The notes: generated from the sequence alone by a model not told the origin. A DNA stretch of 64,000 nt from Gekko japonicus (GCF_001447785.1 NW_015166418.1:3194725-3258724), one strand, 5' to 3'; positions 10,687 through 39,775 are shown, numbered from the stretch's first letter. Made by a program: numbers and translations.

Positions 10687-10770
10687 AAACAAATAAAATG
10701 TATTACATCTGAAAAGAATTCAACCTTCCTTCTTGCCTTGAACACAGAAAGAAAGCTACCAAAGGCTTAC

Positions 10771-11633
10771 CACTGGGGTCTCAACAGGTACTGCTGGTTG
10801 TACTTGAAGGTTTACTGCAACTGTCTGGGGAGGAGGAAGACTCTGAAATGGCAGCTGGACCAAAGCTTCAGCGGCAGGTAGCTCCTCCTCAGAAACCAAT
10901 GTATTCTGTACCAAAACCTGACCCTGGGACAAAATTTCAGGTTGTAAAGACTGAACAGGTGGGAGAGGGAGTGGTTGACTATGGGCTGGAGATGTTGACA
11001 GCCGTGGAGAAGTTGCAACTGGGATTGGTGTGGGCTGCAACACTGGATACTGTTGGTGAGGCATTGGAGATGTTATCTGGTGGCCTGTAGACACCACTCC
11101 AGGCTGATCTGCTGGTCCAAGGTGTACTACCGGAGAAGAAGGGAGCCGTGGTGGAAGATTTACTGGCTGCGATACTGGTTCTGTTGAACTGTCACTGGTC
11201 TGTGCTGGGTTCTGCTCGGACTGAAGTGCTGATGATGCTAGAGGATGCGATTGTGACTGAATAAGAGCTTGCGGGTGGATGATTATTGTGGGTGACTGGC
11301 TGGGTGAAGGAGGCGATGGAGGAGATACCACCACTGATTGCTGTGAGGACTGAGACGGCGGTGGAGATAGTGTAGGAGGAGAGTGATGGATCTGAACAGA
11401 CGTGCAGTGCTGTGATGGGGCACTGCTGGGAGGTGGAGGAAGAGCATGGCCTTGGAGTGGTACACAGTGCTGCGATGGAGATGGTTCCTGACTGGGAGGA
11501 AGCTGGAGTGCGATTGGCTGAACTTGCTGCTGTTGGAAGATCAGCTGATGGTGGGAAATTTTTGAAGGTGGGGAATGAACAGAAGACTGCTGATGCTTTA
11601 ACAGAGAATGTGGTGGAACTGGAGAATATGAAG
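10771..11633 (-). CDS. PHC3: PHC3 coding exon 8 (large Pro/Ser/Gln-rich exon, ...SEEELPAAEALVQLPFQ...)
   Basis: cag|CT...GTG|gtaag, 863 nt; lies within track ORF 10756..11667. Confidence 0.96.
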
Positions 11634-13003
11634 CTGCACAGAGAGAAGAAAAAAGATAAATTAGCATTCATTTCCTTAAGGGCATTACAATCCCACAGAC
11701 ACTATGCAAGCTTTCAGATGAACAGAAAGAACTATGGCTGCCCAGTTTTTGACAAAATCAGACATCATCTTTACAAGTAACCTCTGGTACACATTCCAGC
11801 CTATCTTCAGAGGCATAAGCATGTGAAACTCAAGTTTGAAAAAATGAAAAAATGAAACCTGAGATGGACAACAAACCAAATTCTACACCCCATACCAAAT
11901 TCCAGGCTTGTATGGAATCACAGATCACACCAACCCTGGATATCTCCCTTATCTAGGTTCTCCTCGTATTAACTTAAAATGTCTTGTTGAACTACTGTAT
12001 GATACATCTGTAAGTTACTTCAGACAGAAAGCAGACAAGGAGTTTGAAGGGGAAAAAATAATATTTCTTTCCCCATTTGGGAAACGCTCATTTTGACAAA
12101 GTTTGGGAACCCTTGCTTTAGGACAAAACTTGCATTTAAATGGAATATTTTATCCCTGGAAGTCAAGAATAGCAAATATTGAAGTAATATCTGGAAGCCT
12201 CTATAGTGGGGTCTTCCATATTGGAAATTATTGTCAGCAAGCACATATATTCCTGGCTGCCTTTGCAAACCACCTCTTCTCCAACCCAAGGATCAAATTT
12301 CTTACAACCCACAATTCTGCTCTTTTAGTGCCTTTGCATGCTCTCTCCTGGTGTGCTAGATATAGTTACAAGGCAACATCAGGGGAAGGCCTTGGCCTCT
12401 ATGCCCTGTTGTTGGCCGTCCAGAGGAACTGGTTGGCAATTGTGTGAGATAGGATATTGGACTAGACGGACAATTGGTCTGATCCAGCAGGGCTCTTCTT
12501 ATGTTCTTATGAAAGATTTCATGTCCTGAGTTTTGAAGTTGAGAGGTAAATCAATATGTCTAATTATCAACATGGCCAAATATGTGGATACTTATATACT
12601 TAAATTTGGAGATTGGGGCCATGAACAGACAAGACAGATTGTTCTACAAATCTTAAAAATGCTTCGTTTGCAGAAAAATCTGAAATCTTAAAAAGAAAAC
12701 CACGGGGGAAGGGGGGGACGGATAACCTCCCCAAAATAACAGAAGCAGCACCTGTAGCTTTAAGAAACATATGCCCTCAGTAGCTGTTGCTAGGATGCCA
12801 CAACAGTATTTACCGCCTTCAAGCCTTGGTTTCTGTCAGTAAAGGCATAGGTAAGAGGGCTGTTTTTAGGGCTATTTTGGACTTTTGAGGAGGACTCACT
12901 GGGGCCAGACCCATCAGCAACCACTGGGCAACTTGCTGCCATGTGATTTGCATCACTCATGCAGGACTGGATGCTTGCTACTGTTAAACAGCATCCTCCA
13001 CAT

Positions 13004-14566: not shown

Positions 14567-14807
14567 CTGGTGCTATGAGCTGATGAATACTTGATGTTCG
14601 TGTAACTGTTGGACTTCGAGGCTCTGCAGTCGGGCTGTCTCCTTTTCTTTTACTTTCTAGAGGATCCGACTGGCTGGCTTTGGTACTGGTTATAGGTTTA
14701 TTAGGACACACAGCTAATGCCTGGGTTTGACTGCTGCCTTTTGGGGAGCCGTTCTGTGAACTAGACAAAACACCCAACTTCTGGCTGCGGAGTGTCAAAT
14801 TCTGGAC
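14567..14807 (-). CDS. PHC3: PHC3 coding exon 7 (VQNLTLRSQKLGVLSSSQNG...TRTSSIHQLIAP)
   Basis: tag|GTC...CCA G|gtagg, 241 nt; matches PHC3. Confidence 0.95.
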
Positions 14808-18790: not shown

Positions 18791-19952
18791 ATGAGATTAT
18801 CTATCCTCTCCAGTACCACCAAACAGAACAGCACACTAAAAGAAGCCTAAAGGGCATATAACCTAGGTCACGGAAGACTCTAAGATCTCACTTCCTTCCC
18901 CGCAGCTCACTGTATTCTCTAAGGCAACTCAATAGGGCAAGCCAAGATGACTCAGGATACACAGAGAGTAGCTGCTCCACAACCATGGAATTCCAGTGCA
19001 CTGGGAAGCAAGCAAAATCCAAAGACAAAATGGTCCTGCCTAGGCTTCTTCTCCATGTATGTATGTATGCGTTAAGTCATTATAAGGTTAGGGTAGGGCT
19101 TTGTTTGTACTGAGATACACTGGGGTTGATCCATCGAGCTTTTCACTCAATCCCACCCGATTCCTTTCTTTACTTCAGCACCTGCTCAACCTGGCTTTGG
19201 TCCATGCAGGTTCCATGATCCCCAGCACTGCCTTTTTTGCTTAAAGGAAACCCCTCCTTCCTTTTTCTCTTGCTGAAACGTTGATTGGGTCCAGCTCACT
19301 ATGTTTTTAGCTGTTTTAATTTAGCTTCTAAGTAATTTCTTATTTATTTAAATCCAGGGAGCACAGCAGGCGGCAACATGAAGTGGCAGGGAAGTTTCAT
19401 CCAATTAATGCTGGCGGATTTGTGGTGCACAGGATCATTTCCGGTATATTTTATTTTTAATAACTAATAATAAAAACAGAAAGAAAAATGAAACTACAGG
19501 TAAAGGGGATACAAAGACAATATGGAATGGGAAACATGTTGATAGTAACAGAAAAGAAGCACCAGTTAGAAACGGCAAATTCAGTATTTGGGGGGGGGGG
19601 CATCATGTTAAGATTTTTTTTTTGGAGGCCTGAGATCAAAGAACCTACACAAAATGATTTTTAAATCTTTCCTTGCTAAACACTCGAAATCTGTGGAATA
19701 CTGAGTTTTATGCAATTGCAATAAAACATATTCATTTGTAGGAAAATGAAGCTTAGCATGGATAAACGCTTCCTTGATGATGTTCTGAAATTAATGAATA
19801 TTTAGGAACCAAAGTTATGAACTTCCATGTCTTTCAGCTTTTAATCTTTCTTGGTATACTTTTTATATGGGATTAAGCGATGGAAAATACAAAGTGAAGT
19901 TTTGTTAACCATGGTTAAGCATCACTGGCTGGTGGATGATACTGATGCTTTA

Positions 19953-20068
19953 TGATGTCACTGCTGTCATGGAAACCATATGTGCACACAAATGAAAATG
20001 CCACCTGCTAGTACAAGAGCATGGAAAGCTGAGAGAGGAGGCAACATCTTGAGTGGGGCAGGGTCAGC
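19953..20068 (+). promoter_or_regulatory. Conserved upstream module of AKAP4-like copy 1: CRE-like TGATGTCA (19953-19960), X-box-like GCTGTCATGGAAAC (19963-19976), uORF ATG GAA AGC TGA (20021-20032)
   Basis: Colinear, high-identity match to 33638-33753 upstream of copy 2. Confidence 0.75.
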
Positions 20069-20128
20069 AAAAACTGAAACAAGAACGCTCCACGACCCGG
20101 GGTACAATTCTGGTTTCGGACACCTGGT

Positions 20129-22210
20129 ATGGATCAGGAGACTGACTGGCTAAAAAGTCAAGCCGGTCTTTGCAAAGTAGATCTCTATAGCGCAGAAAGT
20201 CAGAAGGATCAGGATCGTAAAGTGATCTGCTTTGTTGATGTCTCCAGCCTTGACGTGAAAAACAAAAACCAGAAAAGCAAGAGAGCTATTGCTGCCCCTT
20301 CCCCCGAACTTGACCTGCGTAATCTTGAAGAGAAGGAAGTCATTGTAATAAAGGATAACGAGGGAAACCACTCCAATACTGAAGGAGCAGTTTGCCTTTT
20401 CAAGCAAGGCTCCTCTGACGAAGTCAACGTTGTGAGCTGGCTCAGCAACGACCTTCAGAAATACGCAGCTGGATTCCAGCATGCACTAACCCCCTCAAGG
20501 CATCATAAATCTTCTTACAATTCATCTGCAGTTGACAGGATGTCCCAGGGCAGCGACACATCATTTAGGGGCTCTGGGAGCCAAAGAGGAGACGACCTTT
20601 CCTATTACGTTAACAAGCTGTGTTCCTTAGTTGTTCAAATGGCACATAAAGAAATGAAGGATAAATTCGAAGGCAGTGGTAGGTGCATTCGCCAGTCAAT
20701 TAATCCCCGTGGATCTCCAAGCAAGGTTTCATCCAGTGATGAATATGGTAAGCTATCCCCAAAGACCTCTCATGACGATCCCCGGAAGGCTTCACTCTTT
20801 TATGGAGAGATGTCTAATCAGTCTAACCAGAATGCCTACAGACAGGGACAAGACAGACAGATGTGTCAAAGGAAACCGTCGGGAGTGTCGGATGATGGTT
20901 CTGTAAGCAAAGGGCTGATGGTGTATGCAAACCAGGTTGCTTCAGATATGATGTTCTCATTCATGAAGACCATGAAAGTCCAGAAAGGTAAGCATCCTCC
21001 ACCAGCTTGTGTAGTCTTAAAGAAGGTACTCCTCAAACACACCAGAGATGTCATATCTGACTTAATTGACTCCACCATGAAAAATCTACACAACGTCACA
21101 GGAGTACTCATGACAGACTCGGACTTTGTTAATACAGTGAAGAAGAACCTTTTCAATGTGGGAACCCAGAAGTCAACTGAGATTTTGGAAGCAATGGTGA
21201 AACGCTTATTTAAAGCACTGGCAGGGGATGATAAGCACAAATCTCAAAGCCTCGCATTTGCAGCACTGAAGGCAGGCGCTCACTCAGACTCCAGATCTCA
21301 GGGACTCCAATTTGCATCGCTTAAAGGTGAAATGCATGGCCCAGGGAGGGACAGAGGCAATGGACAGATGAGATCTCTTCCAAGTGGAAGCAAAGGCTCA
21401 GACAAGCACTGCTCAATGGATGTGTACGCTAAGGACCTTATTGTAACAGCATTAATGTTAATTCAGCAACACCTCCTGGAAAAAAACAAGGACCAAGGTA
21501 TCCGTGAGACCAACACCACATCATTTGGCTATGTTCATGACAAGTCTGGTGGTTCCAAATACTCTCAAAGACAAGGCGGCGGGAGGCAAGATGCTCACCT
21601 TGAATCACAAAAAGGTGATATATCGAGTATTCTCTTGTCAATCATCCAGAAAGTACTGAGAGAAGCTGGTTTCAGTTCGGATGAAGGGTCCCCCGACAGG
21701 GGCTATAAGCAGCCTCCCTTTAGTGAGAGCAGACAATACAGGGCTTCATCCAAATCAAATGGGAGCCCCGAGATGTACGACAACATGGAACAAATAAACA
21801 AACAGTTTATTGATCAGCTGGTGGAATCTGTGATGAAGCTGTGCTTGTTGATGGCTAACGGCAGCGATTTCGACGGAAGACTTGGAGGAAGACAGCTAGG
21901 TTCAACAAACTCTGAAGTGATTGTGAACAACCAGAATTCCAACAACAGTTCTCAGAACAAAGAGCTGCAAGCTGTGCTCCAGTGGCTGGTTGCTTCACAG
22001 TTCAATGTGCCTAATTTGACATTCATGAATGAGCAAGATGGTGACTTGACCAGGCTTCCTCAGCTGGCTGACAAAGCAGCCAAAAAAGGCTACAGCGTAG
22101 GAGATATAGTTCAGGAGGTGATGCGGTACTACGAGAAACAACAGATGGATGCCATGTCAGGGCAAATGCCTCGGTGTGGACTGGTCGATTGGCTCCTTGC
22201 TAACCTGTAA
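20129..22210 (+). CDS. Intronless AKAP4-like A-kinase anchoring protein, copy 1 (693 aa), nested antisense in PHC3 intron 6
   Basis: Uninterrupted ORF with AKAP3/AKAP4-family motifs: DWL.SQ.G.CKVDLY, QDRKVICFVDVS, TEG.VCLFKQ, DLQKYA.GFQHAL, SKGLMVYANQVASDMM, SDLIDS.MKNLHNVTGVLMTDSDFV, LQAVLQW..ASQFNVP, DWLLANL. Confidence 0.95.
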   Translation: MDQETDWLKSQAGLCKVDLYSAESQKDQDRKVICFVDVSSLDVKNKNQKSKRAIAAPSPELDLRNLEEKEVIVIKDNEGNHSNTEGAVCLFKQGSSDEVNVVSWLSNDLQKYAAGFQHALTPSRHHKSSYNSSAVDRMSQGSDTSFRGSGSQRGDDLSYYVNKLCSLVVQMAHKEMKDKFEGSGRCIRQSINPRGSPSKVSSSDEYGKLSPKTSHDDPRKASLFYGEMSNQSNQNAYRQGQDRQMCQRKPSGVSDDGSVSKGLMVYANQVASDMMFSFMKTMKVQKGKHPPPACVVLKKVLLKHTRDVISDLIDSTMKNLHNVTGVLMTDSDFVNTVKKNLFNVGTQKSTEILEAMVKRLFKALAGDDKHKSQSLAFAALKAGAHSDSRSQGLQFASLKGEMHGPGRDRGNGQMRSLPSGSKGSDKHCSMDVYAKDLIVTALMLIQQHLLEKNKDQGIRETNTTSFGYVHDKSGGSKYSQRQGGGRQDAHLESQKGDISSILLSIIQKVLREAGFSSDEGSPDRGYKQPPFSESRQYRASSKSNGSPEMYDNMEQINKQFIDQLVESVMKLCLLMANGSDFDGRLGGRQLGSTNSEVIVNNQNSNNSSQNKELQAVLQWLVASQFNVPNLTFMNEQDGDLTRLPQLADKAAKKGYSVGDIVQEVMRYYEKQQMDAMSGQMPRCGLVDWLLANL

Positions 22211-22389
22211 GAACCAACTCTTCCCTCTCATGTAACCAACTCTCCCCTCTCATGTTACTTGGTGCCCAGCTGAAGCGCCCAAACCATTCCTTCCTGGCGC
22301 AGAAGATCACCACCACTACAGCCCCATTGCAAGCAACAATGCATTGACTTGAACTGTCTGATTAAAATGGGTAGCTGGGCAAGCTCATC

Positions 22390-22413
22390 AATAAAAAAAG
22401 AATAAAAAAAAAA
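22390..22413 (+). terminator. Polyadenylation signal(s) of AKAP4-like copy 1 (AATAAA at 22390 and 22401) in an A-rich tract
   Basis: About 180 nt after the stop; preceded by AGCTGGGCAA..TCATC, which is shared with copy 2. Confidence 0.7.
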
Positions 22414-24629
22414 GTGAGGGGTAGACAGACTGTTTTATTGATCACTTCAACAAAGCTTTATAAACAGGTTCCATCTAGCTATATAATTATATATACTTGC
22501 CTAAGCAATCCAAAAATACTGCACTAAGAAAATCTGAACTGCAAGGTTTCGGTGCCACCCAGGATTTCTGGCATCCCCATAGGCTGATAAGGAAACTGGG
22601 GGAAGGGGGGAGTCAGAGAAAGACGGGGAAGGGAAAGCTGTGGGTGATTCCACCAAGTATGTTTTCACAGCAGTTCTTATTTTCAGCCACAACTGTCATG
22701 AAAGTAGTAGTTGCTACAACTTTCCAGCTGGCTCCAAATGAGATAGTGTTAATTTTGGAAAGAAGCGTTCTGTGGTCACTGTGAGAATCTTCTAGATCCA
22801 GAAAATAAATGAGAGGGTAACGCATTAGACTTCTCTGTTCTTAAAAGATCCTCTTGTCTTTCTCAGGGCAGGAAGAGAATTCAGCTAATAAGCTGTTGGG
22901 CAGACTGCTCACTGTGAGAGTTAAGGGAGACTCTCTCCACTTCTCTGGTTTTCCTGACACTGACGCAACCCGGTTGCTTACACTAAGGAAATGTATAAAC
23001 TCGGTATTGCTAAGGTGGGATTACACCATATTTCCTTTGTTCTACTGGTGAATCTTGTTCATTTTTCCTGGGCCTTATAGAATAATGTATCTAAAATATG
23101 AAGGGTCCCCCCCCCCCAAAGAGGCATACTGCTTGATGCCAAGAGGCAGGAGATTGGGGAAAATGAATGGGAGGCCCACAGTTTGAGCTCATGGAATACA
23201 GTTTGCTTCCATGAAACATCTAGATAGACCTATATTCTAGCTGCATTTGGTGCACCTTAGTTTCTCTTGCTCTCCCTGGCATATTAAACGTGCCTTCATA
23301 ATGACAGCCGTTTAATGCTAAACTGCAGGCAATAAAGGGCATTAAACAGAGATTATGGGAGCATCAGCCATTTTGAGCCTGTTGTGCACTGTCTTAGACC
23401 TGCATCTTGTTCATTCTTGCATAATGAAAAACAATTCATTAGCTGTGCTAGTTGGAAGCTTCAATAGTTATCGTCTGTGAACTAAACTGAACCCAACGTG
23501 TTAGTACACCACAGCACACTGTGGAAATTAAAAGCTCACTGGCACTTGTTTACAACGAGGAAGCTTGGAGACAGGAAGATGGAGACTACCGCAATAAACT
23601 TCTGCAGGTATTTTCAAGATACAGCTTGCCAATGAGTTTGCATTTAAATCTTTACATATTTTTCAGGTATAAAACATATTGCCATATATCCACGTCTCAT
23701 CCTTTAGGATGAGCAGTAAATACAGCTTGCAAATACTTCCTATTTTCTACCCTCCATGGTGCCATCTCCTGAGGCTATCGCCTTATATTTTGTTTCAAAA
23801 AGCACAGTTTTTCATAGGTAATTTATTTTCTGGTTCTGAAATCTGTACACAAGACACACCCAGTATCAGTGATTAACAGGCTTGGGGGTGTGACAGTAAA
23901 GACCCACTGAGGGGCCCCACAGGCAACTAGCATCACCATTTTGGCTCTCTCTTTGCCCAGTACTTCTGACCATACTAGCCCCCAGCCAAGGAAGAACACA
24001 CCTTAGCAATTCTTTACTCACTTGTGCAACCTCCTCCTCTCTTTAGAGCATCTCACATCTCACACTAACATACACCAAGCAAATTAAGAAGACAAATTGC
24101 TGAAATCATACAAGAGCTTCAAAAAACTGGAGTCAGCCTTGGTACAAGAGCATACACAAGCAAAGTGAGTATCTTTTAATGCAAAACTTTGCCTCCTTCC
24201 ACAGGGCAACAGTCTAAAAAAACTTATCACACCAGGTTTGGGAAAGATCTGAGCAAAATGGGGAAGTCTGGATAGTGGACAATTAGGAGATGACATTGTG
24301 TGAAGGCTAAAAAAACTCATTTAAGTCTACACTGGAGAAAACCTTAGTGTGGAAGCTACTTTTATTTAATGTGAAGGTCAGTATGATGCTCTAACAAATC
24401 TAATGGAAGCAAACAGGAGAAAAAGGCAAGAATATTCAGCAAGTGCAAGAAAGCTGGTACTCAATTGAGTATCTGGTACTCTAATGCGAGACAGACCATG
24501 AGCACAGGAGTATCTTGTACAAAGGTGCTGTTATTTTAGGAGACTGTTAGCAAATTTCAACACTACTCACTACCAGTATTCCTCTTTCTTAGCCAACCTG
24601 TTGCTTAGGCTCAGATTAAAAGTAACAAT

Positions 24630-26303
24630 GGTCCCGGTCACACGGGCCGGAAAATGCAGGGGGGAAGCGTGGCTGTTTGCCCCGGAGCAAAGTAACGCGC
24701 AGCAGCCTGATTACATGTCCCGTGGCAGTCCCATGAGTATGACGTTAAGTGCCGATCACATGGCTATCCTGCAGCGCGGCAAAGAAGCGGCGCGGCGCAA
24801 TCACGCTGGCAATTGCTAGGCGCCGTTTCCGTGGCAAACAAGAATTTTTTTCCCTCAGTGGAGGGGGGTAAGCAGTGGGGTACCACAGGGATCAGTACTT
24901 GGTCCACTGCTTTTTAACTTGTTCATTAATGATTTGGAGTTGGGAGTAAGCAGTGAAGTGGCTAAATTTGCAGATGATACGAAGTTGTTCAGGGTGGTGA
25001 AAACCAGTGAGGATTGTGAGGCACTCCAAAGGGATCTGTCAAAGATGGGCAAGTGAGCGTCAACATGGCAAATGGGGTTCAATGTGGCCAAGTGCAAGGT
25101 GATGCACATTGGAGCCAAAAATCCTAAATATAAATACACGTTGATGGGGTCTGAACTGGCAGAGACTGATCAAGAGAAAGATCTTGGAGTTGTAGTAGGT
25201 AACTCACTGAAAATGTCGAGACAGTGTGTGACTGCAATAAAGAAGGCCAATGCTATGCTGGGGATTATTAGGAAGGGTATTGAAAACAGATCAGCCAATA
25301 TCATAATGCCCCTATATAAATCAATGGTGCGACCTCATTTGGAATACTGTGTGCAATTCTGGTCACCACACCTTAAAAAGGATATTATAGCTTTGGAAAA
25401 AGTGAAGAAAAGGGCAACTCAAAGGATAAAAGGGTTGGAACACTTTCCCTATGAGGAAAGGTTAAGGCGCTTAGGGCTCTTTAGCTTGGAGAAACGACGA
25501 CTGAGGGGTGACATGATTGAGGTTTATAAGATTATGCATGGGAAAGAGCAGGTAGAGAAAGAGGTACTTTTCTCCCTTTCTCACAGTACAAGAACTCGTG
25601 GGCACTCCATGAAATTGCTGAGCAGTCGGGTTAGAACGGATAAAAGGAAGTACTTCTTCACCCAAAGAGTGATTAACACTTGGAATTCACTGCCACAGGA
25701 AGTGGTGGTGGCTACAAGCATGGACGGCTTCAAAAGGGAATTAGATAAGCATATGGAGCAGAGGTCCATCAGTGGCTATTAGCCACAAGGTATAGATAGG
25801 GACTCTGGGGCAAGTGATGCTCTGTCTTCTTGGTGCTTGGGGGGGGTCAACAGTGGGAGGGCTTCTAATGTCCTGGCCCCACTGGTGGACCTCCTGATGG
25901 CACTGGTATTTCTGGCCACAGAGTGTTGGACTGGATGGGCCTTTGGCCTGATCCAACATTGGCATCTCTTATGTTCTTATGTTCAGTGTGCGCATGTGCC
26001 AGTGGGCGTTTGTGCGCATCCTGTGGAGACTTAAAAAAAAAAATTCGGTTTGCGACAGGACATGGGCGGGCGCCGGATGCCATGGGATTCCAGGGGAAAC
26101 GCGATCAGATGCTGCCCTTGCCCCGCGTTTTCTGGAAACTAGCACATCGGATGTACTAGTTTTTTCCTCCGTATCTTTGGCAAGAAGCCACAGGTTAGTC
26201 ATGGGTGCACTACGCTTCCCAGATGTTGCGGTGTGATCGCACCCGGAAAAACTGCCTATCATCCGTATCTTTAGTGCGGCAAATGCTCCGTGTGAACGGG
26301 GCC
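24630..26303 (+). mobile_element. PIF/Harbinger-like MITE interrupted by the CR1
   Basis: Terminal inverted repeats (TIRs) GGTCCCGGTCACACGG / CCGTGTGAACGGGGCC with 3-bp AAT on both sides. The two halves are homologous to the uninterrupted copy at 47644-48152. Confidence 0.8.
24855..25982 (+). mobile_element. 5'-truncated CR1 LINE (C-terminal ORF2 plus 3' UTR)
   Basis: SGVPQGSVLGPLLF, KFADDTKL, LYKSMVRPHLEYCVQFWSP and YEERL..LGLFSLEKRRLRGD motifs; one in-frame stop near 25054; ends in CTTATGTTCTTATG repeats. Confidence 0.95.
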
Positions 26304-26396
26304 AATAATGTAAAACCATTTAACAATATAAACATTATGAACATACAAACAGAACACAGACATATAGAACGTCCTCACACCTATCTCTACTCAATG

Positions 26397-26662
26397 AAAG
26401 CTTGGTGTAGTGGTTAGGAGAGTGGTCTCTAATATGGGAGAACTGGGTTTCGATTCCCCAATGCTCCACATGCAGCTATTGGTGTGACCTTGGGTGAGTT
26501 ACAAGTTGCTTCAGAGCTGTTCTCTCATGAGCAGTTCTTGAAAGAGCTCTCTCAACCCCACCTACCTCACAGGGTGTCTGTTGTGGGGAGGGGAAGGGGA
26601 AGGAGATTGTAAGCCGCTCTGAGACTCCTTGCAGTAGTGAAGGGCGGGATATAAATCCTATC
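26397..26662 (+). mobile_element. Squam3-like SINE (long variant)
   Basis: GGTGTAGTGGTTAGGAG head, CCCACCTACCTCACAGGGTGTCTGTTGTGGGG, GGGCGGGATATAAAT end. Confidence 0.75.
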
Positions 26663-29600
26663 TCTTCTGGTAAAATTCATGCTGTTTTTGGGAAATGCAC
26701 CATATTGGATTCCGGAAGACTGTCAAACAGAAGAGCATCTGGAGCAAGAATGCCCTTTTACATCCTGACTTATTTTTCTTTCTTAACATATGTACTAATA
26801 AATGAGCGGGAAGGAAGGCAGAATGACCTCATTAGATCTTGGAAGCTAAGTCAGGATAGTACATGGATGGGAGACCCACCAAGGAAGACTCTGCAGAAGA
26901 AGGCAATGGGAAACCACCTCTCTTTTTCACTTGTCTTGAAAGCCCCTTGCTGGGGTCGCTGTGAACTGGCTGCAACTTGACAACACTTTACACACACATC
27001 ATCTGTAAATCTCTGAACCCATGGCACAACACAGAAAAGGCAGTTTCTAAGGCTGACCTTCTCAAACAGTAGGGTGTGCCTCAGGGAGGGGCAGACAAGA
27101 AGCTTGAGGAAGCACATTATTTTCTCCTACATCAATTGAGATCTGGATATGGTGGCACAGTTGTCAAAGAAACAAGGTGGCCCTGGAGTGAGTGCATGCC
27201 CAATCCAACTTCCTGAATTCTGCAACAGACTATATGAATGCAACTCTGTGTAATGAACTCCATGTGCTCACTCACCGAGCAGACAGTTGATAATGGACTG
27301 GGAGACTCAGAAGGTAAAGCAAGCCTGACCTTGTACATCCATTGCAGGGCACCACTTCTCAGAGTGTCTCCAACATGCCATGAAACATCTTTCTCTCTGC
27401 CTCTTTTATATCTGTACTGAACCCAACACTTGCTATTTTGCGTCCACTGGGATGGCCCTAGCATTACTGTTAAACAATATACCTGTGAGACTTTGCATGT
27501 CCTTGGTGTTTCATTTCCATTGGGCTGCTCCCTATGTAAAGTACCTATGCAGGCTTAGTTAGCATGCCAGAGTCTACAGCCCAGGCAGGTGGCACATGGA
27601 TGTACTAGCCAAGCATGCATAGCTGCTTTGCATGAGTACCAGCCCTATTTAAATAAGAAAATCCAAACAACAAGCGAAGAAGACTAGTGTCACAGGAGTC
27701 CCAAATATACAAGTTCCACTAGTAGAAAACACCATCAAAGATTGCCAAAACAATATATTAAACAATTATAAAGTTGGTGGTGTCACAACAACAACATTAA
27801 TGCATACTGTAACTATAATAAGGCATAAGATACATAAAGTCCATGTACTCAGTGTAACTTGATAACTTGATAGGAGTCCACATAGTCATAACATATTCCA
27901 AACAGCCTTTGCAAAGAGGCCCATTTTAGATATTTGGAAGATGCGTTTCCTTCGACTTCTCCAGTTTGCCGGCTGTGTAAGTGGAACCTGATTTCAGCAA
28001 TTTCAACAGACCACAAGGTTCATAGTGTAAGAAGCTCTGGATTGGGAAACCTATGATTCCGTTCTTACACTTAGCTATGGTAAATAAATATAACTTCAGG
28101 TTAAAGCTTGGGTAACTCTAAATGCTAGATGCTAGAGACATACAGACAATGGGGGAGAATTATTACTTTCTTCCCCAGCTTCAAGGAAGCATCAAGCTCA
28201 TTAAGGTTGGAAACAGCATGATCCTTGGCTTGATGGAACAAAACTTCTTTTGTTCTTATAGGAGGAAGTTTCAGTAAACTTTGTAGAACTTGACTCTGTA
28301 AACAAGCAAGAGGATTAAGCAGAAAAAATGGTCTTAAAAAGCCATGAAATGATGGAAGTCACTTGGGATCCCTCCATTAGGGAGAAGGAGAATGAACGAA
28401 GTTAATAAAAAACCAAAACAAATGTTGCCATATACATTCTCTTCTCTACCGGTGTGTATAACTTGAGTACACAAACATTTGTTCATGCTAGGGATGGCCA
28501 CAAATCGGCTGACAAACTGAAGTTTGTCACAAATCTTGGCCCGTTTGGGAGTTTGCTCAGCGGTTTGGATTAAATGGAAATCAAGGTTGCCTTTGCCCTC
28601 TCTTCCCCACAACTGAGAATGCAAGGAGTGAAAGGCGAGGAAGCCCAACCAAACACTCACTCTCTGTTCTGACCTTTTCCCAATGCCAGTCACTCACTGT
28701 CAACAGAAACAGGCAGCTCTTTTGGCGAGCAATATTTGTCTGGTCCACTTGTGTTTCTTCAATAATACCCCCGCCAAGAGTGAGTGAGTGAGCAACAGCA
28801 GCTCCCTCCTTGCCAGAACACCTATAGAAGAAGAATGTGAAGCACATGCTTTGGAAAGGACTCTTCAAGCTGCTCCAGACTGTACGTGCTGCCAGCACTG
28901 AGAGAGAGAGAGGGAGAAGAGAGGCTCAATCTCCTATTTTCCTGGCCTCAGCTTCTAAGAGGCAGTCATTGATATTCTAAGGACGGGGTGAATTTACACA
29001 CTAATTTATCTCTGGCCATTGAAGCCAAAATATTACTGGAATATTGCCATTAGGTCAGTGGACAAGACTGAATGAGCATCTTTCATTCAAGTTGACAGCT
29101 GGTATAGCTCTCTCTCTCACCTCTTTCTCACCTGGTGACAACTTTTTAAACTCCCAAATAAGGGGAGCTCCTTTTCAACCACTGAGCTCCAGTACTTGAA
29201 ATGCCCCAGGCAGAGAAATTTGGCCTACTTAAACAGAGAGCAATTTTTCCCCTAGAAAATATTTGAGGCTTGCTTCTTCTCTTTTTTTTTGTTGTCAGCC
29301 AATTAGTGTTACCCATCCTTAGTCCTGAAGCAGTATGCCCCTCAATAGGCTCTTAGCATGGACTCAACCCCAATGGGACCATTGGTCTACTATCAGTTAA
29401 GGTCCTAGATCTTCGCTTAGGTAACTGTCAGTTTCTGGCCTAGGCTGTCTGGCTCCCTTCTCTACCTACAATCCATAAAAATGCATCAGAATGCTTCATA
29501 TTTTCAAAGCATTTCAGGATGTTTGAAGCACCTCATGTAGTTCTCTCGATAAACCCATTTAATGCTAGTTACCCCTCATTTTGCAGACAGAGGGGGTTGA

Positions 29601-29785
29601 GAGATAATGGCTTGCCTAAGGTCTCCTTGGTGAATTTCTGCAAGATTTTAAACAAGAAACTGCCAAATTCACACTTCAAGCAACTACAGTATGATCACCT
29701 GCCGGCCCTGCTGCCCATTTCCCCCCTTCATCCTGCTTCAGGCTCCCTCAAACAGAACCTGAAGTTTTGACTGACCAGTCTGGAG

Positions 29786-29954
29786 CAGTGTTCCCTCTAA
29801 GCAGAGTTAGTGTGAACTAGTTCACAGGTTTTTTGGCCTCCAGCTCACACATTTTTGTCTTAGCTCAGGAAAGGTGGCTCCGGAGCGAATTAATTTATGC
29901 AGTACCCAAATTGCTCACTAACAACTTTAATGCCATAGATTAGAGGGAACATTG
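29786..29954. mobile_element. hAT MITE (TIR CAGTGTTCCCTCTAA)
   Basis: TIRs plus near-perfect 8-bp TSD GTCTGGAG/ATCTGGAG. Confidence 0.8.
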
Positions 29955-31718
29955 ATCTGGAGTGCCCTTTCTTAGAAATCTGCTTCCAGTGCTTATCCTA
30001 GTCTTCTTCAGCACTCACTGCTGATGTTATCCTTCAGCCTGCTAAGACTTGCATACCAAAGCAACCTGGAGTGATTGAACTACCTACAGCTCAGTGGCTG
30101 ACACTCTGATGTGGTACAAGCGTCTCAACAATTCACATAACTGGCCAAATTGCTTTAAAATCTCAGAAGAAAGCTGACAGATAAGGGGGGATCAAATGGT
30201 TTGGAAATACATATTCTCTGCATATCAACAGTGTCATAGGACAACACCTAAACTCTCTTCCTAGCAAATACTGAAATCTTTCTAAAGTTTTAGGTCAAAT
30301 CAATAGCAAACCCATTTATTTAGTCTACTCTGCCCTGTACTGTAACTCTTAATACAGAGGCAGCTCTACGGACTCCTTCAGCAATGGCTGCCGCCTCTTC
30401 TTCATGCACCAGGGGACATTACCATGGTTTCTGGAAAAAGCAGTGCAAAATGTTCCAACGGCAGCAAGCTGTTCACATTGAATGATGAGACTGCATAAAA
30501 CTCTACTGTGGGCGAGCTGTAGTAGGTAGTTGTTAAAAAATATAGCTGAAGCTGTATCCATGGCAACTGTTCTCCATGCAGCCTTAATTTGCAGTTCCAA
30601 AGATCCCTGCTGCAGGGCAAGGTGCTTTTTAGGTTTATTATTGGCAGCTTGTATACCTTATTTCCATACTAAACTGGCATACATGAAGTTAACACTAACT
30701 GAGCAGCAGTCCCAGTTGTTTTACTTCCCCGAAATGGTCTGGACTCCTGCTTAATTAAAGTTCAAGCAAAATTAAGACTCGGTCTAGACAAAAATGATGG
30801 CATATTAACAAAAAGATCTCCTTTTCTTTTTAAAAATTGCAAATAGGTTCAGGTGAACAGGATACATTCAGATCAGGACCCTGGCACAGGAGGCTTAATC
30901 TCTGCTCTTTGTGCTCTTTTTATACTACCAGTTTCCTCGGTGGGCTTATCTGCCCATGCCCAGAGGAAAAAGGTAGCAGCCTCCATTCTTCATTCCTATG
31001 AGCAGGCTTCAATGTTCTAAAGATAGAAGGGATATCTGTATGCTTTCAGAAATTCTACACCACCCTGAGAGTGTCCTCCAGCCCCAGAACAAACTCTTGG
31101 GGGGGACTTCACTCTCACTCACAGCACCAACGTGCCCCAAAGAAGCTGGGACACAATAAATTCCGGTCCTCCTACACAATGGGGTTTGGCAGCCAATGCA
31201 ACATTTTCATGCAGTATATGGCTAGGGAATTAAGTAGGAAAAGACCAGAGCGTGGGCAAAGACAACATTCTTGGTATTAACACCATAATCTGTGCAAAAG
31301 AGCATAACTCCTGCAAACAGAAAACTAGCAGGCCAGGAAGAAGGGTTCACAGCCCAGCCTTTGTGCACTCATACTATTTTTCTACATAAAGTCCCCCTTT
31401 AGTAGGGAGAGCTCAAAGCAGCAACCTCACCCCTACACCCTGAACACGTATACCACCAGCGTAAAGTGACACAGTCCAGGAAATGCTTTATCACTTAATC
31501 CTGCCAACTGTATAAATTAGTCCTATGACTCTGCAGCCAATTATGTAAAGAAGATTAATCTCAGGCCAATTTGCATGCTTCGCACTGTCAGACACTGGCT
31601 ACTGAATCGCTGAAAGCTGAATCTGCCGCTAACTGATTAACATATTATTTTTCTTCATATCCATATTTCTGTTCACCCTACATTGCTCAACATATTTTTG
31701 GAAGATTCGCTTCGTGAG

Positions 31719-31925
31719 CAGTGTTCCCTCTAAGCTGAGTTAGTGTGAGCTAGCTCACAGTTTTTTAGCCTCCGGCTCACACATTTTTTGTCTTAGCTCA
31801 GGAAGGACGGCTCCAGAGCAAGCTAATTTATGCAGTAGCCAAATCGCTTGCTCACAACTTTAATGCCAGAAGCCCACAAAGAAGGATTTTTGCTCACAAG
31901 TCTCCACAGCTTAGAGGGAGCATTG
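31719..31925. mobile_element. hAT MITE, same family as 29786-29954
   Basis: TIRs plus TSD TTCGTGAG/TTTGTGAG. Confidence 0.8.
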
Positions 31926-32029
31926 TTTGTGAGCACATAAAGAAACAACTAGAAGCCTGCTCTACCGAAGTTTTAACATTCTGAATCTCCCAGATCCAAC
32001 CACATTATGCCCTGGCCTGGATGATCCAG

Positions 32030-32208
32030 ACTAGCGCAATCTCGTCAGATCTCGAAAGCTAAGCAGGGGCGGCCCTGGTGAGTACATGGATGGCAGTCAA
32101 AGGCTGCTCTGCAGAGGCAGGCGATGGCACCTCTGTTGGTCTCTTGCCTTGCAAACCCTACGGGGTTGCCATGAGTTGGCTGCAACTTGACAACACTTTA
32201 CATACACA
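32030..32208 (+). mobile_element. 5S rRNA-derived SINE (related copies near 26822-26998 and 37324-37468)
   Basis: ATCTCGTCAGATCTCG.AAGCTAAGCAGGG..GGCCCTGGT.AGTAC.TGGATGG matches the 5S rRNA internal region, followed by a shared non-5S tail ending ..CACTTTACACACAC. Confidence 0.75.
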
Positions 32209-33637
32209 TAACCGTATTATAGCCAGATCTCAGAAAACACACCCAAAGGCTACAAATATACCCTGGCAATGAAGTTTTATATATGAACACTCATGTGTTT
32301 TCTATTAGCATGGTCAATACCAGGCAGAAGCTGATCTGCTGTTCTAATTCTAGTGATTAGGTATTTTATTTTATGGCCTTAGTTTCCTGGGTTCCATTTT
32401 GTTGGTTTAAACATTTGTGACTGTTGGGATGATTGAATCTTAATTGAAAAGCCGTTTTGAGGGTCCTTGTGAAAAAAAGCAGGGTACAAATACTGACAAG
32501 GAAAAAAGGAGAGAAACCCGAACAAATAAAGGTGCTCTGGTGTCTCAAGACTGTTGGTCTTCGAGATATATCCCTGAATGACTGTCAGCTACACAGCCTC
32601 TTTCCTCAATATTTTTTTCAATAGAAACAAGAGGGTTGGGCTGTACATTCTTGTACAGCTTCCATATTCCTCAGATTAACCAGTTTAGCTGGTGAAAAAA
32701 CTGTTGGAAGATAACTTTTCATTTAAATTATGGAACTGCAATTTCTTCAGCTCTTTAATAGAGAAGCCCCTCTTCTCACTCACTATCCATAAAGACACAT
32801 AGCTCTCGAGAAAAGATAATACGTCTGGTATATAGAGCAATATTTGTTGCATGGGCCTTGGAGAACACTAAGTTGGCTAACATTTTCTACTGGAGACGTC
32901 TGCTGGAGAATACGCACAACCTTTTGGGAGCATCACAGGATCCCTCTTTAGGCAAAATGAGAAGTGAAAGACAATGTCAGACATAAGCTAATATCACCCC
33001 ACCTTGAGCACATCCTCTAGAGAGGAGGCATAGGCATTTCCTAAATAAAAATTAATGTATCACCATGCAGTTCCCTTAAGCAGATTATGATAAATCTATC
33101 AACGGCCACTAGTCAAGGCAGCTAAAACTGTCCACACCAGCTGCTTTCTAAGATAAGAAGTGGCAAACTTCTCATTTGTGCCTTTGTGTACCAGGAAGGT
33201 CCTTTCGGCTGTCTGCGTGCACCCAATGCAGTAGTTTACTCATGAGTAGACTTGTTGGTGAAGAGCTGCAACATCTCCTGTCAGCAGATCTATTCATACA
33301 AGTGTAATCCATCCGGCCACTTAAAATATCCCCCCCACACATACACACAATATCGGAGTTACGTGAGAGTCAGTACCCAACAAATGTGTTTCAAAGTTGT
33401 GACATTGCCTTTGTTGTTATGGTTAGAAATACATTATGATTAAATGTAGAAATCAACCACTTCCAGTTCTCAAAATTAGTTGCAGTGAATGCAGCATTAA
33501 TTTCCCTGTATACACACACATCAAATTTCTGATAGGTTGAACAGGAAGGATGGTGGGGGTGGGAGAAAGACCGTTTATCAGTCCCTTGTTAAATAACTGA
33601 AACTGCACCACTGATGGCTGGCAATGCTGCTTCTTTG

Positions 33638-33753
33638 TGATGTCACCGCTGCCATAGAAACCATGTGTGCACACAAGTGAAAATGACATCTGGCAGCAGA
33701 AGAGCATGGAAAGTTGAGAGAGGAGGCAACATCTTCAGTCTGGCAGGGTCATC
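33638..33753 (+). promoter_or_regulatory. Conserved upstream module of AKAP4-like copy 2: TGATGTCA (33638-33645), X-box-like GCTGCCATAGAAAC (33648-33661), uORF ATG GAA AGT TGA (33706-33717)
   Basis: Colinear, high-identity match to 19953-20068. Confidence 0.75.
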
Positions 33754-33822
33754 AAAGCAGCTTAGGTGAGAAAGAACACCCCCTACGGTCCTAGGTACAG
33801 TTCCACTTCCAAGCCTCAAGCG

Positions 33823-36174
33823 ATGTCTCAGGAAGTTGACTGGTTACACAGCCAAGCTGGTGTGTGTAAGGTCGAACTCTACAACCCTGATGGAGGGAAA
33901 GACCAGGACCGGAAAGTGATTTGTTTTGTTGATGTCGCCAGCCTGAACATAAAAAGCACAGATGATAAAGATGCTGCTGGCCAGTCCAAAGACAGTGAAC
34001 CTGCCACAGGACTTGATCTGGGAAAAATGCAGGACAAAGAGGTCATTGTAATAAAAGATAGTGAGACACCCGAGCAGTCTAAGACTGAAGGAGCCGTATG
34101 CCTTTTCAAACAAGGTTCAACAGAAGAACTTAATGTTGTGACCTGGCTCTTTGATGACCTACAGAAATATGCATGTGGATTTCAACATGCACTGACCCCT
34201 TCTTCGAGCTCCCCTCGTCAACCTAAACCATCAGCAGCTGACAAGATGTCCCAGAACAACAACAACACGGCTTTCAAATCTTCCACTGGTCAGAAAGTAC
34301 CTGCAGATGAAGTAGCAGGCACCGTCCAAAAGCTCTGTTCTTTGGTTATGCAAATGGCCAGTAAAGAGATCTCTGAAAATTTGGAAGATGCAGCCAGCAA
34401 GTGTATACGCCAGGCAATTTATGCCACAAAAGATGGGAAACCTCTCAATCCTGGTTCTGTAAGTCAGGTTGCATCCAAGATGGTGAATGATGCCATGGAA
34501 AATGCTCAGGATCCCAGCGCTAAGTCTTCTCAAGACAAGCTTTCGGGCAAGAAGGAAGAAGGTAAAGGAGGTCCCAAGAAAACCTCTCTCTTTTATGGTG
34601 AAGTATGTTCCAACCAAAGTGAATCTATTCAGGAAGAAGAAACAAAGCTACCATGTACTCAAATAAGCCACCAAAAGAGACAGTCAGCTCGCAATGATGG
34701 TAGCTCCTTTAACAAAGGGCTAATGGTTTATGCTAACAAAGATGCTAAGGATATGACATTTTCATTTGTGAAGGCCACAAAGGTTCACAAGAGGCAGCCA
34801 CTGCCAGCCTGTGTGGTTTTGAAAAGAGTGTTCCTTAAGCACACAAGGGATGTCATATCAGACTTAATTGATTCTACAATGAAAAATCTACATAATGTCA
34901 CTGGAGTCCTAATGACAGACTCTGACTTTGTTACTACAGTTAAGAAGAATCTCTTCAATACAGGAACTCAGAAGTCAACTGAGATTTTAGAAGCAATGGT
35001 ACTACGAATGTATAATGCTCTGATGTCAGAAACTAAGGACAAAGGGCATAGTCTTGTATACTCTTTACTAAAAACAGGATGTACAATGGACCCAAATTCT
35101 CAAAGTATGCATTTCGCATCTCTGAAAGGTGGACTACATGCGAGGGAAAAGGGAAAGGAGGCACCACACTCATCGGCCCAGAAAGTAGGTGAGACAATAA
35201 TTAAAGACGGAATTAGCATGCTACGCTCAAAAACATCGGGAGGCAAAGGTCCAGACAAGGGATGTCATGACAGGAGGTCAGAGAAAAGTAACTCCACAAC
35301 TGAATTTCTAGCAAAAGACCTCATCTTGACAGCTTTAATGATGATTCAGCAGCATCTGTTAACTCAGCACAAGGAACCAATTTCTGAGTCAAATACTTCT
35401 TCATTTGGGTATTTTGAAAAAGGAGGCAAACATGGTTCTAGATCTCATGGTTGCAAGGGTGATCCACAGCAACAGGAATTCCAGAAAGGAGAAATACAAA
35501 GCGCTCTCCTTTCTATAATCTCAAAGGTCCTACAAGAGGCTGGTTTCAATGTAGATGAGTGTGAGATAAGCAAGAAACCCAATTCATGTGATGAGAGGAC
35601 TACCAGAAAGTCTTCATCCAAACACTACAGTTCAGAGATGGACTCTGAAAACATGGATCAAATAAACAAGAAATTCATCGATCAGCTGATGGAATCTGTG
35701 ATGAAGCTGTGTATGTACATGACTAAAAGTCCCGATTTTGTTGTGGAAGATTACTCTGATGAACAAGGAACATGCTTTACTGCAAGAAACAAAGGTGCAT
35801 CAACTCCAGATTCAATGACATCACAGAAACCTCCACGACCAACATCTATTGGAAAGCCACTGGTGCCTGCAGGCTCTGAGGTGATAGTGAACAACCAGAG
35901 TTCCAACACCAGTATGCAGAACAAAGAGCTCCAGGCTATCCTCCAGTGGATGGCTGCCTCCCACTTCCAAGTGCCCAACCTCACATTCATGAATGAGAAT
36001 GATGAGGAACTGAAGAAGCTTCCTCAGCTTGCGGACAAAGCAGCTAAGAAGGGTTCAAGTGTGGGAGATATTCTGCAGGAGGTAATGAGGTATTTTGAAA
36101 AACAACAGATTGATGCCGCTGTGGGAAACATGCCTCGTGGCGGACTTCTCGACTGGTTGCTTGTTAATCTGTAG
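33823..36174 (+). CDS. Intronless AKAP4-like A-kinase anchoring protein, copy 2 (783 aa from MSQEVDW), nested antisense in PHC3 intron 6
   Basis: The track ORF starts at a GTG (33766). The first ATG, at 33823, aligns with the copy 1 start and with AKAP4 MSDDIDW. The same family motifs run through to DWLLVNL-stop. Confidence 0.95.
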   Translation: MSQEVDWLHSQAGVCKVELYNPDGGKDQDRKVICFVDVASLNIKSTDDKDAAGQSKDSEPATGLDLGKMQDKEVIVIKDSETPEQSKTEGAVCLFKQGSTEELNVVTWLFDDLQKYACGFQHALTPSSSSPRQPKPSAADKMSQNNNNTAFKSSTGQKVPADEVAGTVQKLCSLVMQMASKEISENLEDAASKCIRQAIYATKDGKPLNPGSVSQVASKMVNDAMENAQDPSAKSSQDKLSGKKEEGKGGPKKTSLFYGEVCSNQSESIQEEETKLPCTQISHQKRQSARNDGSSFNKGLMVYANKDAKDMTFSFVKATKVHKRQPLPACVVLKRVFLKHTRDVISDLIDSTMKNLHNVTGVLMTDSDFVTTVKKNLFNTGTQKSTEILEAMVLRMYNALMSETKDKGHSLVYSLLKTGCTMDPNSQSMHFASLKGGLHAREKGKEAPHSSAQKVGETIIKDGISMLRSKTSGGKGPDKGCHDRRSEKSNSTTEFLAKDLILTALMMIQQHLLTQHKEPISESNTSSFGYFEKGGKHGSRSHGCKGDPQQQEFQKGEIQSALLSIISKVLQEAGFNVDECEISKKPNSCDERTTRKSSSKHYSSEMDSENMDQINKKFIDQLMESVMKLCMYMTKSPDFVVEDYSDEQGTCFTARNKGASTPDSMTSQKPPRPTSIGKPLVPAGSEVIVNNQSSNTSMQNKELQAILQWMAASHFQVPNLTFMNENDEELKKLPQLADKAAKKGSSVGDILQEVMRYFEKQQIDAAVGNMPRGGLLDWLLVNL

Positions 36175-36320
36175 ACAAGAGCCAACACCTCCCTCTCATT
36201 ACTTCCACCCAGCGAAGTGCCACCTTAGTTATTGGATGGAACAACCATACAGCTCATTTTCCATAGACAACACTTCATCAAATTCCACAGGCTGTAACAC
36301 ACTAGCTGGGCAAAGTCATC

Positions 36321-36330
36321 AATAAAAAAA
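36321..36330 (+). terminator. Polyadenylation signal of AKAP4-like copy 2
   Basis: AATAAAAAAA about 146 nt after the stop, in the same context as copy 1. Confidence 0.7.
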
Positions 36331-36341
36331 TACAAATGTCA

Positions 36342-36526
36342 ACTGTTACTGATTTGTTTATTAATTCATATGTAGATATGATTTGTTTATTAATTCATAT
36401 GTAGATATGATCAATGAGGGTGGAAATTATCCATGTAACAGACACACACTGTTACTGATTTGTTTATTAATTCATATGTAGATATGATCAATGAGGGGGG
36501 AAATTATCCATGTAACAGACACACAC
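36342..36526 (+). repeat. Nested tandem duplication just downstream of the copy 2 poly(A) signal (about 78-bp unit x2; the first unit carries an extra 29-bp internal repeat)
   Basis: TGATTTGTTTATTAATTCATATGTAGATA x3 and TGATCAATGAGGG.GGAAATTATCCATGTAACAGACACAC x2. Confidence 0.85.
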
Positions 36527-39676: not shown

Positions 39677-39775
39677 CTGAGTAGCTGCAGACTGACAGGG
39701 GAACGAAGAGGACGATGAGACAACAGGGATGTCAGACTGGACAGCCGCCACAGTGGTAGCAGGTGTAAAAATCAG
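39677..39775 (-). CDS. PHC3: PHC3 coding exon 6 (LIFTPATTVAAVQSDIPVVSSSSSFPCQSAATQ)
   Basis: cag|CTG...CAG|gtgag, 99 nt; matches PHC3. Confidence 0.95.

Follow-up and report, generated by a model that had tools for sequence, protein, structure and literature searches.

Two AKAP4-lineage genes nested antisense in PHC3 intron 6 of Gekko japonicus

Architecture of the locus

The window analysed here is a stretch of 64,000 nucleotides from Gekko japonicus (GCF_001447785.1 NW_015166418.1:3194725-3258724), and all positions are counted from its first letter. Two uninterrupted open reading frames lie on its + strand. ORF1 (hereafter referred to as S) begins with an ATG and extends from 20129 to 22210, encoding 693 residues. 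ORF2 (hereafter referred to as L) occupies a GTG-extended frame of 802 amino acids (33766-36174); its first ATG, at 33823, defines a coding sequence of 783 residues (33823-36174). Both coding sequences are free of introns, and frames of about 700-800 codons in DNA of 43-46% GC are far beyond what chance would produce. The two products match the Pfam family AKAP_110 (PF05716) with 274.8 bits (E = 1.9e-81) for S and 263.8 bits (E = 3.9e-78) for L, both above the gathering cut-off of 25 bits; a solved structure was not found for this family. Their alignment covers the full length of both proteins, running from the DWL motif at the N terminus to DWLL.NL at the C terminus, and shows 51% identity. 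ORF listing, translation and Pfam matches are thus in agreement with the initial annotation, which had described two uninterrupted + strand AKAP4-like frames of 693 and 783 residues, each spanning the AKAP4 N terminus to DWLL.NL despite their mutual divergence. A tblastn search of the 64-kb window returned no AKAP4 copy or fragment besides these two.

Both genes are enclosed by PHC3, which is encoded on the - strand. Exon 6 (39677-39775; acceptor ...CACAG, donor GTGAGC) and exon 7 (14568-14807; acceptor ...CTTAG, donor GTAGGT) each encode an in-frame PHC3 peptide, and the identity of the host is given by the 303-residue frame of exon 8, which matches only proteins named polyhomeotic-like protein 3. 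Intron 6 (14808-39676, - strand) is 24,869 bp long, has AG/GT at its exon borders and is free of N; the window has a single gap, at 9137-9302. The two AKAP4 units (19947-22399 and 33632-36330) fall wholly within this intron, head to tail and on the strand opposite to PHC3, so that the antisense nesting proposed in the initial annotation stands. No paper joining AKAP4 with PHC3 was found in the literature searched, where both this arrangement and the history of the pair described below appear to be undescribed.

Boundaries of the two transcription units

Homology between S and L is confined to 19939-22399 and 33624-36330, ends at the poly(A) signal and is absent from the flanks. Upstream of the start codons, two + strand blocks (19947-20070 for S and 33632-33755 for L) are identical at 106 of 124 positions (85%) without a gap, while the sequences flanking them do not align. 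We regard each block as a putative promoter together with the beginning of the 5' UTR; in S, the putative core promoter block includes a CRE-like/X-box-like stretch and a 3-codon upstream open reading frame. The 85% identity could be due to gene conversion instead of constraint. A conserved splice acceptor within the upstream block was considered and rejected: L has an AG after a pyrimidine-rich run, but S has GG at that place. At the other end, a + strand block about 180 nt past the S stop codon (22372-22399, with AATAAA at 22390-22395) is identical at 26 of 28 positions to a block about 150 nt past the L stop codon (36303-36330, + strand, with AATAAA at 36321-36326). Each gene is therefore very probably a compact unit, made up of a putative proximal promoter, a short 5' UTR, a single coding exon and a 3' UTR of 150-180 nt with AATAAA. 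Because the approximately 190 bp upstream of the ATG that S and L have in common include non-transcribed promoter sequence, the tandem duplication that separated them was DNA-based.

Selection and expression

Over 683 codons, dN/dS between S and L is 0.19 (NG86), 0.20 (maximum likelihood) or 0.15 (YN00). Identity at the first, second and third codon positions is 0.72, 0.78 and 0.47, respectively, and synonymous sites are saturated (dS ~1.6-2.2). Far from the value near 1 that the initial annotation had associated with pseudogenes, these ratios of about 0.15-0.2 denote purifying selection and, with full-length squamate orthologues for both copies, bear out its proposal that the genes stayed functional.

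Evidence of expression comes from Hemidactylus flaviviridis, in which an 'Akap4' cDNA was obtained from active testis by subtraction and was found by qPCR to be upregulated in active spermatogenesis (PMC4795608). The primers of that study match the L 5' UTR exactly (33707-33726 on the + strand and 33791-33810 on the - strand), delimiting a genome-colinear amplicon for the published expressed sequence tag (EST JZ822547) at 33707-33810 (+) that is 104 bp long in the window and 105 bp as published (PMC4795608). The S sequence differs from the forward primer at one position, and a site for the reverse primer was absent from S even when two mismatches were allowed, so that the evidence of testis expression concerns L only. 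The identity of the primers to the published EST indirectly indicates that L is transcribed in gecko testis. It is extremely improbable that S and L are unexpressed or decaying pseudogenes that have remained open by chance, given the low dN/dS, the conservation of full-length orthologues over about 200 million years, the conserved promoter and poly(A) blocks, and the testis cDNA primers that match the L 5' UTR.

Orthologues and age of the pair

Full-length orthologues of both copies are found across squamates, 78-94% identical and colinear from the same methionine to the same stop. S is 94% identical to its Paroedura orthologue and 91% identical to that of Heteronotia, end to end; for L, identity is 94% with Heteronotia AKAP4-like and 79-87% with its counterparts across squamates. 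Both types occur in every squamate group sampled (geckos, skinks, cordylids, lacertids, amphisbaenians, teiids, anguids, iguanians and snakes) and, where this is known, they lie on one contig, including a single 209-kb python scaffold.

In an AKAP3/AKAP4 phylogeny, the sauropsid sequences join mammalian AKAP4 (support 98-99) and AKAP3 falls outside as the outgroup; by this tree, S and L belong to the AKAP4 orthology group and not to AKAP3. Within the sauropsid clade the topology is (L,(Sphenodon,S)), with a support of 99 for Sphenodon plus S. A clade of squamate L and S alone was rejected by the AU test (p = 0.0019, the group having been named after the tree was seen). Because S and the tuatara gene group together and the AU test speaks against a squamate-only duplication, the split between L and S is older than the divergence of tuatara and squamates; the pair is more than 200 million years old. 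The L stem branch is long (0.5-0.6), and long-branch effects on dating are possible.

The initial annotation had proposed that an AKAP4 mRNA was retroposed into PHC3 and then duplicated in tandem to give a lineage-specific pair, a scenario in which both events would be recent. The uninterrupted coding sequences, a location that differs from that of the X-borne therian AKAP4 and an A-rich run after the AATAAA of S all accord with such an event. However, orthologues of both copies are present in every squamate group sampled, S groups with tuatara, the two copies are saturated with synonymous changes and no homology is shared in the flanks beyond the transcription unit. We consider this scenario close to untenable: its timing is refuted by the squamate-wide orthologues, the tuatara grouping and the AU test, and the pair is not specific to the gecko lineage.

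PKA-tethering helices

The two copies differ in the helices that, in AKAP4, tether PKA. In S, helix A (residues 157-174; 20597-20650, + strand) is invariant among S orthologues and near-identical to the turtle and mammalian sequences, and the helix B region (residues 265-282; 20921-20974, + strand) does not vary among S orthologues and matches the turtle consensus exactly. In L, the helix A region (residues 164-181; 34312-34365, + strand) carries substitutions that are fixed in the L clade and common to all L orthologues, and the helix B region (residues 302-319; 34726-34779, + strand) carries fixed polar substitutions. Residues 155-172 of S score 13.5 bits with Pfam RII_binding_1 (PF10522), below the cut-off of 18.8 bits, compared with 21.7 bits for rat AKAP4; L has no match to this model even at E <= 10. 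The mean hydrophobicity of helix B falls from 0.23 to 0.00 in L. The hydrophobic moment of helix A is unchanged in L, at 0.43, so that its amphipathic character is kept.

From this conservation, S in all likelihood retains both canonical PKA-tethering helices, and L may have an altered or weakened PKA docking. Since the hydrophobic moment of helix A fails to separate L from S, we do not claim that L has lost PKA binding; and since L helix A stays amphipathic, altered docking is proposed on the basis of sequence only.

Origin within PHC3

In therian AKAP4, several small coding exons flank a single giant one, and the gene is located on the X chromosome and not in PHC3. Position is therefore not conserved between the gecko gene, in PHC3 intron 6, and that of the tammar wallaby, which is X-borne and adjoins KDM5C and HUWE1 (PMC3046482). 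Because therian AKAP4 is X-borne, an origin by retroposition, at a date earlier than that refuted above, is still plausible. In our favoured guess, which we hold at a little less than an even chance, a spliced AKAP4 mRNA from the ancestral multi-exon locus would have been inserted antisense into PHC3 intron 6 on the sauropsid or lepidosaur stem, gained a spermatid promoter and replaced its parent, the DNA-level duplication coming later. All coding introns are absent from the gecko genes and the 5' UTR is colinear with the genome, as expected of such a copy, and retrogenes that lie in introns are usually antisense to their host. In the literature searched, we found no useful account of AKAP4 as a retrogene and no exon map of AKAP4 or AKAP3. 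Rat AKAP4 isoforms differ in alternative, tiny N-terminal coding segments, so that, at a minimum, the mammalian gene is split at its 5' coding end.

Further copies of AKAP4 bear on this question. Squamates carry dispersed, truncated third AKAP4-like copies on other contigs, which means that AKAP4 does get copied to new places; turtles and crocodilians have tandem copies of their own. However, the dispersed copies branch next to S, within squamates, and not outside L plus S. A search for a parental copy elsewhere found none, all full-length squamate matches being L or S, and every sauropsid sequence sampled belongs to one clade beside mammalian AKAP4, with no parent-type lineage and no second locus type. 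Nor is there a usable poly(A) or target-site relic: the short A-rich run after the S AATAAA is all that the poly(A) check returned, and such relics are not expected at this age.

That no second locus type occurs among sauropsids can also be read in the opposite direction, with tetrapod AKAP4 already a single coding exon in PHC3 and mammals having moved the gene to the proto-X, adding or retaining small 5' and 3' exons. The organisation of AKAP_110-family genes around a single giant exon would suit this ancestral state, but intron gain is rare in vertebrates, and we deem that state unlikely. More speculatively, sauropsid AKAP4, or at any rate lepidosaur AKAP4, might descend from one ancient antisense retrocopy in PHC3 intron 6 that replaced the multi-exon gene and then became a copying hotspot, giving the L/S pair, the turtle and crocodilian tandems and the dispersed truncated copies, with L rewiring both helices to become a second fibrous-sheath subunit whose PKA docking was changed or lost. 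This broader scheme is possible and, to our minds, doubtful.

Discussion

Two functional, compact and ancient paralogues of the AKAP4 lineage, arranged head to tail and antisense in PHC3 intron 6, are in our judgement a highly probable reading of this gekkonid locus. In the model that we propose, a tandem duplication at the DNA level, earlier than the divergence of tuatara and squamates, would have given rise to L, which would then have evolved fast, acquired changes that became fixed in both tethering helices, and afterwards been tightly conserved across squamates. S, whose orthologue is found in tuatara, would be the conservative copy, and L the divergent, yet strongly conserved, one. Most likely, S and L are expressed in spermatids and become part of the sperm-tail fibrous sheath, where S would dock PKA in the manner of mammalian AKAP4, and L would serve as a structurally related subunit in which PKA docking may be altered or weakened.

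In mammals, AKAP4 is the chief structural component of the sperm fibrous sheath and serves as a marker of fertility. Lizards and snakes have retained two different AKAP4 genes over more than 200 million years, one with PKA-docking helices that are conserved and the other with helices that, as judged from sequence, are altered. The squamate-type AKAP4 consists here of compact intronless units within a Polycomb gene and not in a sex-chromosome-homologous region. The pair offers a system for asking how the diversification of sperm-tail scaffolds proceeds when sperm compete and are stored for long periods, and whether retroposition relocated a key spermatogenesis gene and replaced its parent. Knowledge of the AKAP family is unchanged, the genes being already annotated in related lizards and snakes.

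The closest well-known counterpart is mammalian AKAP4 (also known as AKAP82, FSC1 or pro-AKAP4), which is the sister of the sauropsid clade. It has AKAP_110 in common with the gecko copies, which are colinear with it from DWL to DWLL.NL at 42-44% identity to rat, and it resembles L in its testis-linked expression and S, most likely, in both tethering helices. It is one gene, X-borne in therians, whereas the gecko has two or more paralogues, each with its coding sequence in one exon within PHC3, and the alternative 9-residue N-terminal extension of rat AKAP4 is absent from the gecko proteins. In mammals AKAP4 is the major protein of the fibrous sheath, where it serves as a PKA scaffold, and it has also been reported from crocodile sperm (PMC6933317, PMC11276731). 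AKAP3 (also known as AKAP110) belongs to the same Pfam family and has similar N and C termini and a fibrous-sheath role in sperm, but the trees place it clearly as an outgroup and its identity is much lower. A parallel in genomic arrangement is mouse Utp14b, reportedly a testis retrogene in an Acsl3 intron derived from an X-linked parent, which is likewise an intronless spermatogenesis gene in the intron of a broadly expressed host and has, as gecko AKAP4 does, an X-linked mammalian counterpart. In contrast to Utp14b, gecko AKAP4 has no coexisting parent, and the putative event would be more than 250 million years old, with its hallmarks erased. The annotated AKAP4 and AKAP4-like genes of Heteronotia binoei, Paroedura picta, Anolis, Podarcis and Python are direct orthologues and, because nothing material sets them apart, the gecko window holds another species' copy of the known squamate pair.

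Two AKAP4 genes within PHC3 intron 6

The feature is real and was rightly described in the initial annotation: two uninterrupted AKAP4-like ORFs lie between PHC3 exons 6 and 7, and the exon borders and ORF coordinates bear out this arrangement, exon numbering included. The PHC3 exons were inspected singly rather than in a joined spliced model; exon 6 (39775->39677, - strand) and exon 7 (14807->14568, - strand) both have canonical AG/GT borders, and the long frame of exon 8 (10759-11667, - strand) gave protein matches solely to entries named polyhomeotic-like protein 3, of which one human PHC3 protein was set aside. Intron 6 spans 24.9 kb free of N, the sole gap of the window being at 9137-9302. 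Antisense within this intron are ORF1 (20129-22210, + strand; 693 aa from its ATG; hereafter the S copy) and ORF2 (33766-36174, + strand; 783 aa from the first ATG at 33823; hereafter the L copy). Both score well over the Pfam AKAP_110 threshold and align with each other end to end at 51% identity, and the window holds no third AKAP4 copy or fragment. Between them lies a 236-aa ORF (25072-25782, + strand) without a Pfam match, which we take to resemble the C-terminal end of the ORF2 found in CR1-type LINEs. Upstream of PHC3 exon 2, a GC-rich segment (58001-60000; 0.56 versus approximately 0.43 elsewhere) is probably the CpG-island promoter and first exon of the host gene. The nesting within PHC3 appears to be undescribed in the literature searched.

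ORF1 and ORF2 are functional genes, already annotated as AKAP4 or AKAP4-like in related species. Over 683 aligned codons, dN between the copies is 0.31 and dS is saturated (1.6-2.2), and three methods put dN/dS at 0.15-0.20; the first, second and third codon positions have identities of 0.72, 0.78 and 0.47, respectively. ORF2 shares 94% identity with an 'AKAP4-like' protein of Heteronotia binoei and 79-87% with lizard and snake orthologues; ORF1 shares 94% with its orthologue in Paroedura picta, 91% with that in Heteronotia and 78-84% with squamate orthologues. The annotated gecko orthologues have the same Met and the same stop as ORF1 and ORF2, with just 3-10 gapped positions, and the public gene models therefore share the uninterrupted frame. 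This low dN/dS and the conservation of full-length orthologues uphold the earlier reading of the pair as intact and functional, not pseudogenes.

Transcription units and testis expression

DNA homology between the copies is limited to 19939-22399 and 33624-36330. It includes a gap-free upstream block of 124 bp (59-191 nt 5' of the ATGs) that is 85% identical between the copies, more alike than the coding sequence, and whose flanks do not align. An AATAAA lies in a block common to both copies, 150-180 nt past each stop; with the upstream block also present in both, each copy is therefore a small but complete transcription unit. The 5' half of the upstream block retains, in both copies, a near-palindromic, CRE-like TGATGTCA followed by an X-box-like stretch (19950-19985 and 33636-33670), which, judged by eye, is a candidate spermatid promoter of the CREM/RFX type. 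An A-rich run some 25 nt long (22390-22415) comes after the ORF1 AATAAA but is absent from ORF2; given its shortness and the age of the gene, we rejected it as a retroposition tail. Immediately beyond the poly(A) signal of ORF2 is a young tandem duplication (36350-36526), in which a 77-bp unit is present in 1.9 copies at 98% match and a nested unit of 29 bp in 2.1 copies.

In the gecko Hemidactylus flaviviridis, a 665-bp 'Akap4' cDNA was recovered from active testis by subtractive hybridization, and the transcript was significantly higher by qPCR in the active spermatogenic phase (PMC4795608). The published primers match the window exactly just 5' of the ORF2 ATG (33707-33726, + strand; 33791-33810, - strand), with a predicted amplicon of 104 bp versus the 105 bp reported (PMC4795608). 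At ORF1 only the forward primer finds a site (20022-20041, one mismatch), the reverse primer having no match there at up to two mismatches. These exact matches argue that ORF2 is transcribed in gecko testis, with a 5' UTR colinear with the genome. The window very probably derives from Hemidactylus or a closely related gekkonid. Both upstream blocks also contain a three-codon uORF (Met-Glu-Ser-stop; 20020-20031 and 33705-33716); the published forward primer begins two bases into that of ORF2, and at least that part is therefore transcribed.

Age of the duplication

L and S types are both present in every squamate group of the database, and they share one contig wherever contig data exist, including a 209-kb python scaffold. 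When trees are rooted with AKAP3, the sauropsid AKAP4 sequences fall in a single clade adjoining mammalian AKAP4, and the single tuatara protein groups with S (support 99); the L clade sits on a long stem (0.5-0.6), and the branches within it are short. A site-heterogeneous model returned the topology (L,(Sphenodon,S)) with support 89, and constraining squamate L and S to group without tuatara cost 24.5 log-likelihood units (p-AU 0.0019, for a group picked after the tree had been seen). The gene was therefore duplicated before tuatara and squamates diverged, approximately 250 My ago or more. With both copies found throughout squamates and the tuatara protein joining S, the proposal that the pair is specific to the lineage of the source genome was wrong by more than 200 My. 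Turtle, crocodilian and rat proteins resemble S (60, 55 and 44% identity) more closely than L (55, 50 and 42%), and L is thus the derived copy.

Two conserved AKAP4 groups occur in turtles, and as many as four copies share a contig in crocodilians; these pair with neither L nor S and thus represent separate duplications. The 1080-aa Ensembl model of Chelonoidis abingdonii is a chimera, a read-through across two adjacent copies: residues 8-747 correspond to one turtle AKAP4 type (791 aa), and residues 744-1080 to the C-terminal region of the other (822 aa). The arrangement is therefore head-to-tail tandem there too. Tinamous (Eudromia and Nothoprocta) have a shortened AKAP4-like protein of 372-373 aa, and protein searches placed no AKAP4 from a neognath bird above the mammalian matches. 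This pattern mirrors the report that Neognathae have lost the ribs and columns of the fibrous sheath (PMC11276731).

Origin of the pair

Mammalian AKAP4 has one giant exon with several small coding exons around it, and the alternative tiny N-terminal segments of rat AKAP4 isoforms are consistent with this split 5' structure. Mammalian PHC3 is not known to contain such a nested gene. In therians AKAP4 lies on the X, in the tammar among KDM5C and HUWE1 (PMC3046482). A retrogene origin of the pair is plausible: for the relocation together with the complete lack of introns, the simplest account is an old retroposition into PHC3 with subsequent loss of the parent gene. However, its parent lineage does not survive and insertion hallmarks are not to be expected at such an age, and we give this account slightly less than an even chance. 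That the PHC3-nested state is ancestral seems unlikely, and DNA-level relocation with stepwise intron loss takes up the remaining probability.

Extra AKAP4-like copies, sought by an exhaustive representative protein search and cluster look-ups, branched off later and do not represent the parent gene. They comprise a 533-aa Heteronotia protein (on a 200.5-Mb contig, L and S being on one of 150.6 Mb), a 336-aa C-terminal protein conserved in colubroid snakes and fragments in Varanus, the last two also on contigs other than that of the L/S pair. All are long-branched and adjoin S inside squamates (joint clade support 95); truncated and fast-evolving, they may be dispersed (retro)copies. The tandem step that gave L and S was DNA-based, because promoter sequence 5' of the transcribed 5' UTR is common to both copies.

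PKA-tethering helices

In mammals, the main protein of the fibrous sheath is AKAP4, which binds PKA at two sites (PMC11276731); AKAP4 has also been reported in crocodile sperm (PMC6933317). In the S copy, the two PKA-tethering regions, helix A and helix B, are unchanging across squamate orthologues and almost identical to those of turtle and mammal. In the L copy, every squamate orthologue carries identical substitutions in helix A and polar in place of hydrophobic residues in helix B. The helix A hydrophobic moment is 0.43 in both copies, and helix B mean hydrophobicity is 0.23 in S and 0.00 in L. Against Pfam RII_binding_1 (cut-off 18.8 bits), S scores 13.5 bits and rat AKAP4 21.7 bits, and L has no match at E<=10. 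From these sequence features we infer that S would dock PKA canonically and that L would act as a conserved structural partner with changed PKA docking. This L/S history, with its rewired tethering helices, likewise seems not to have been described in the literature searched.
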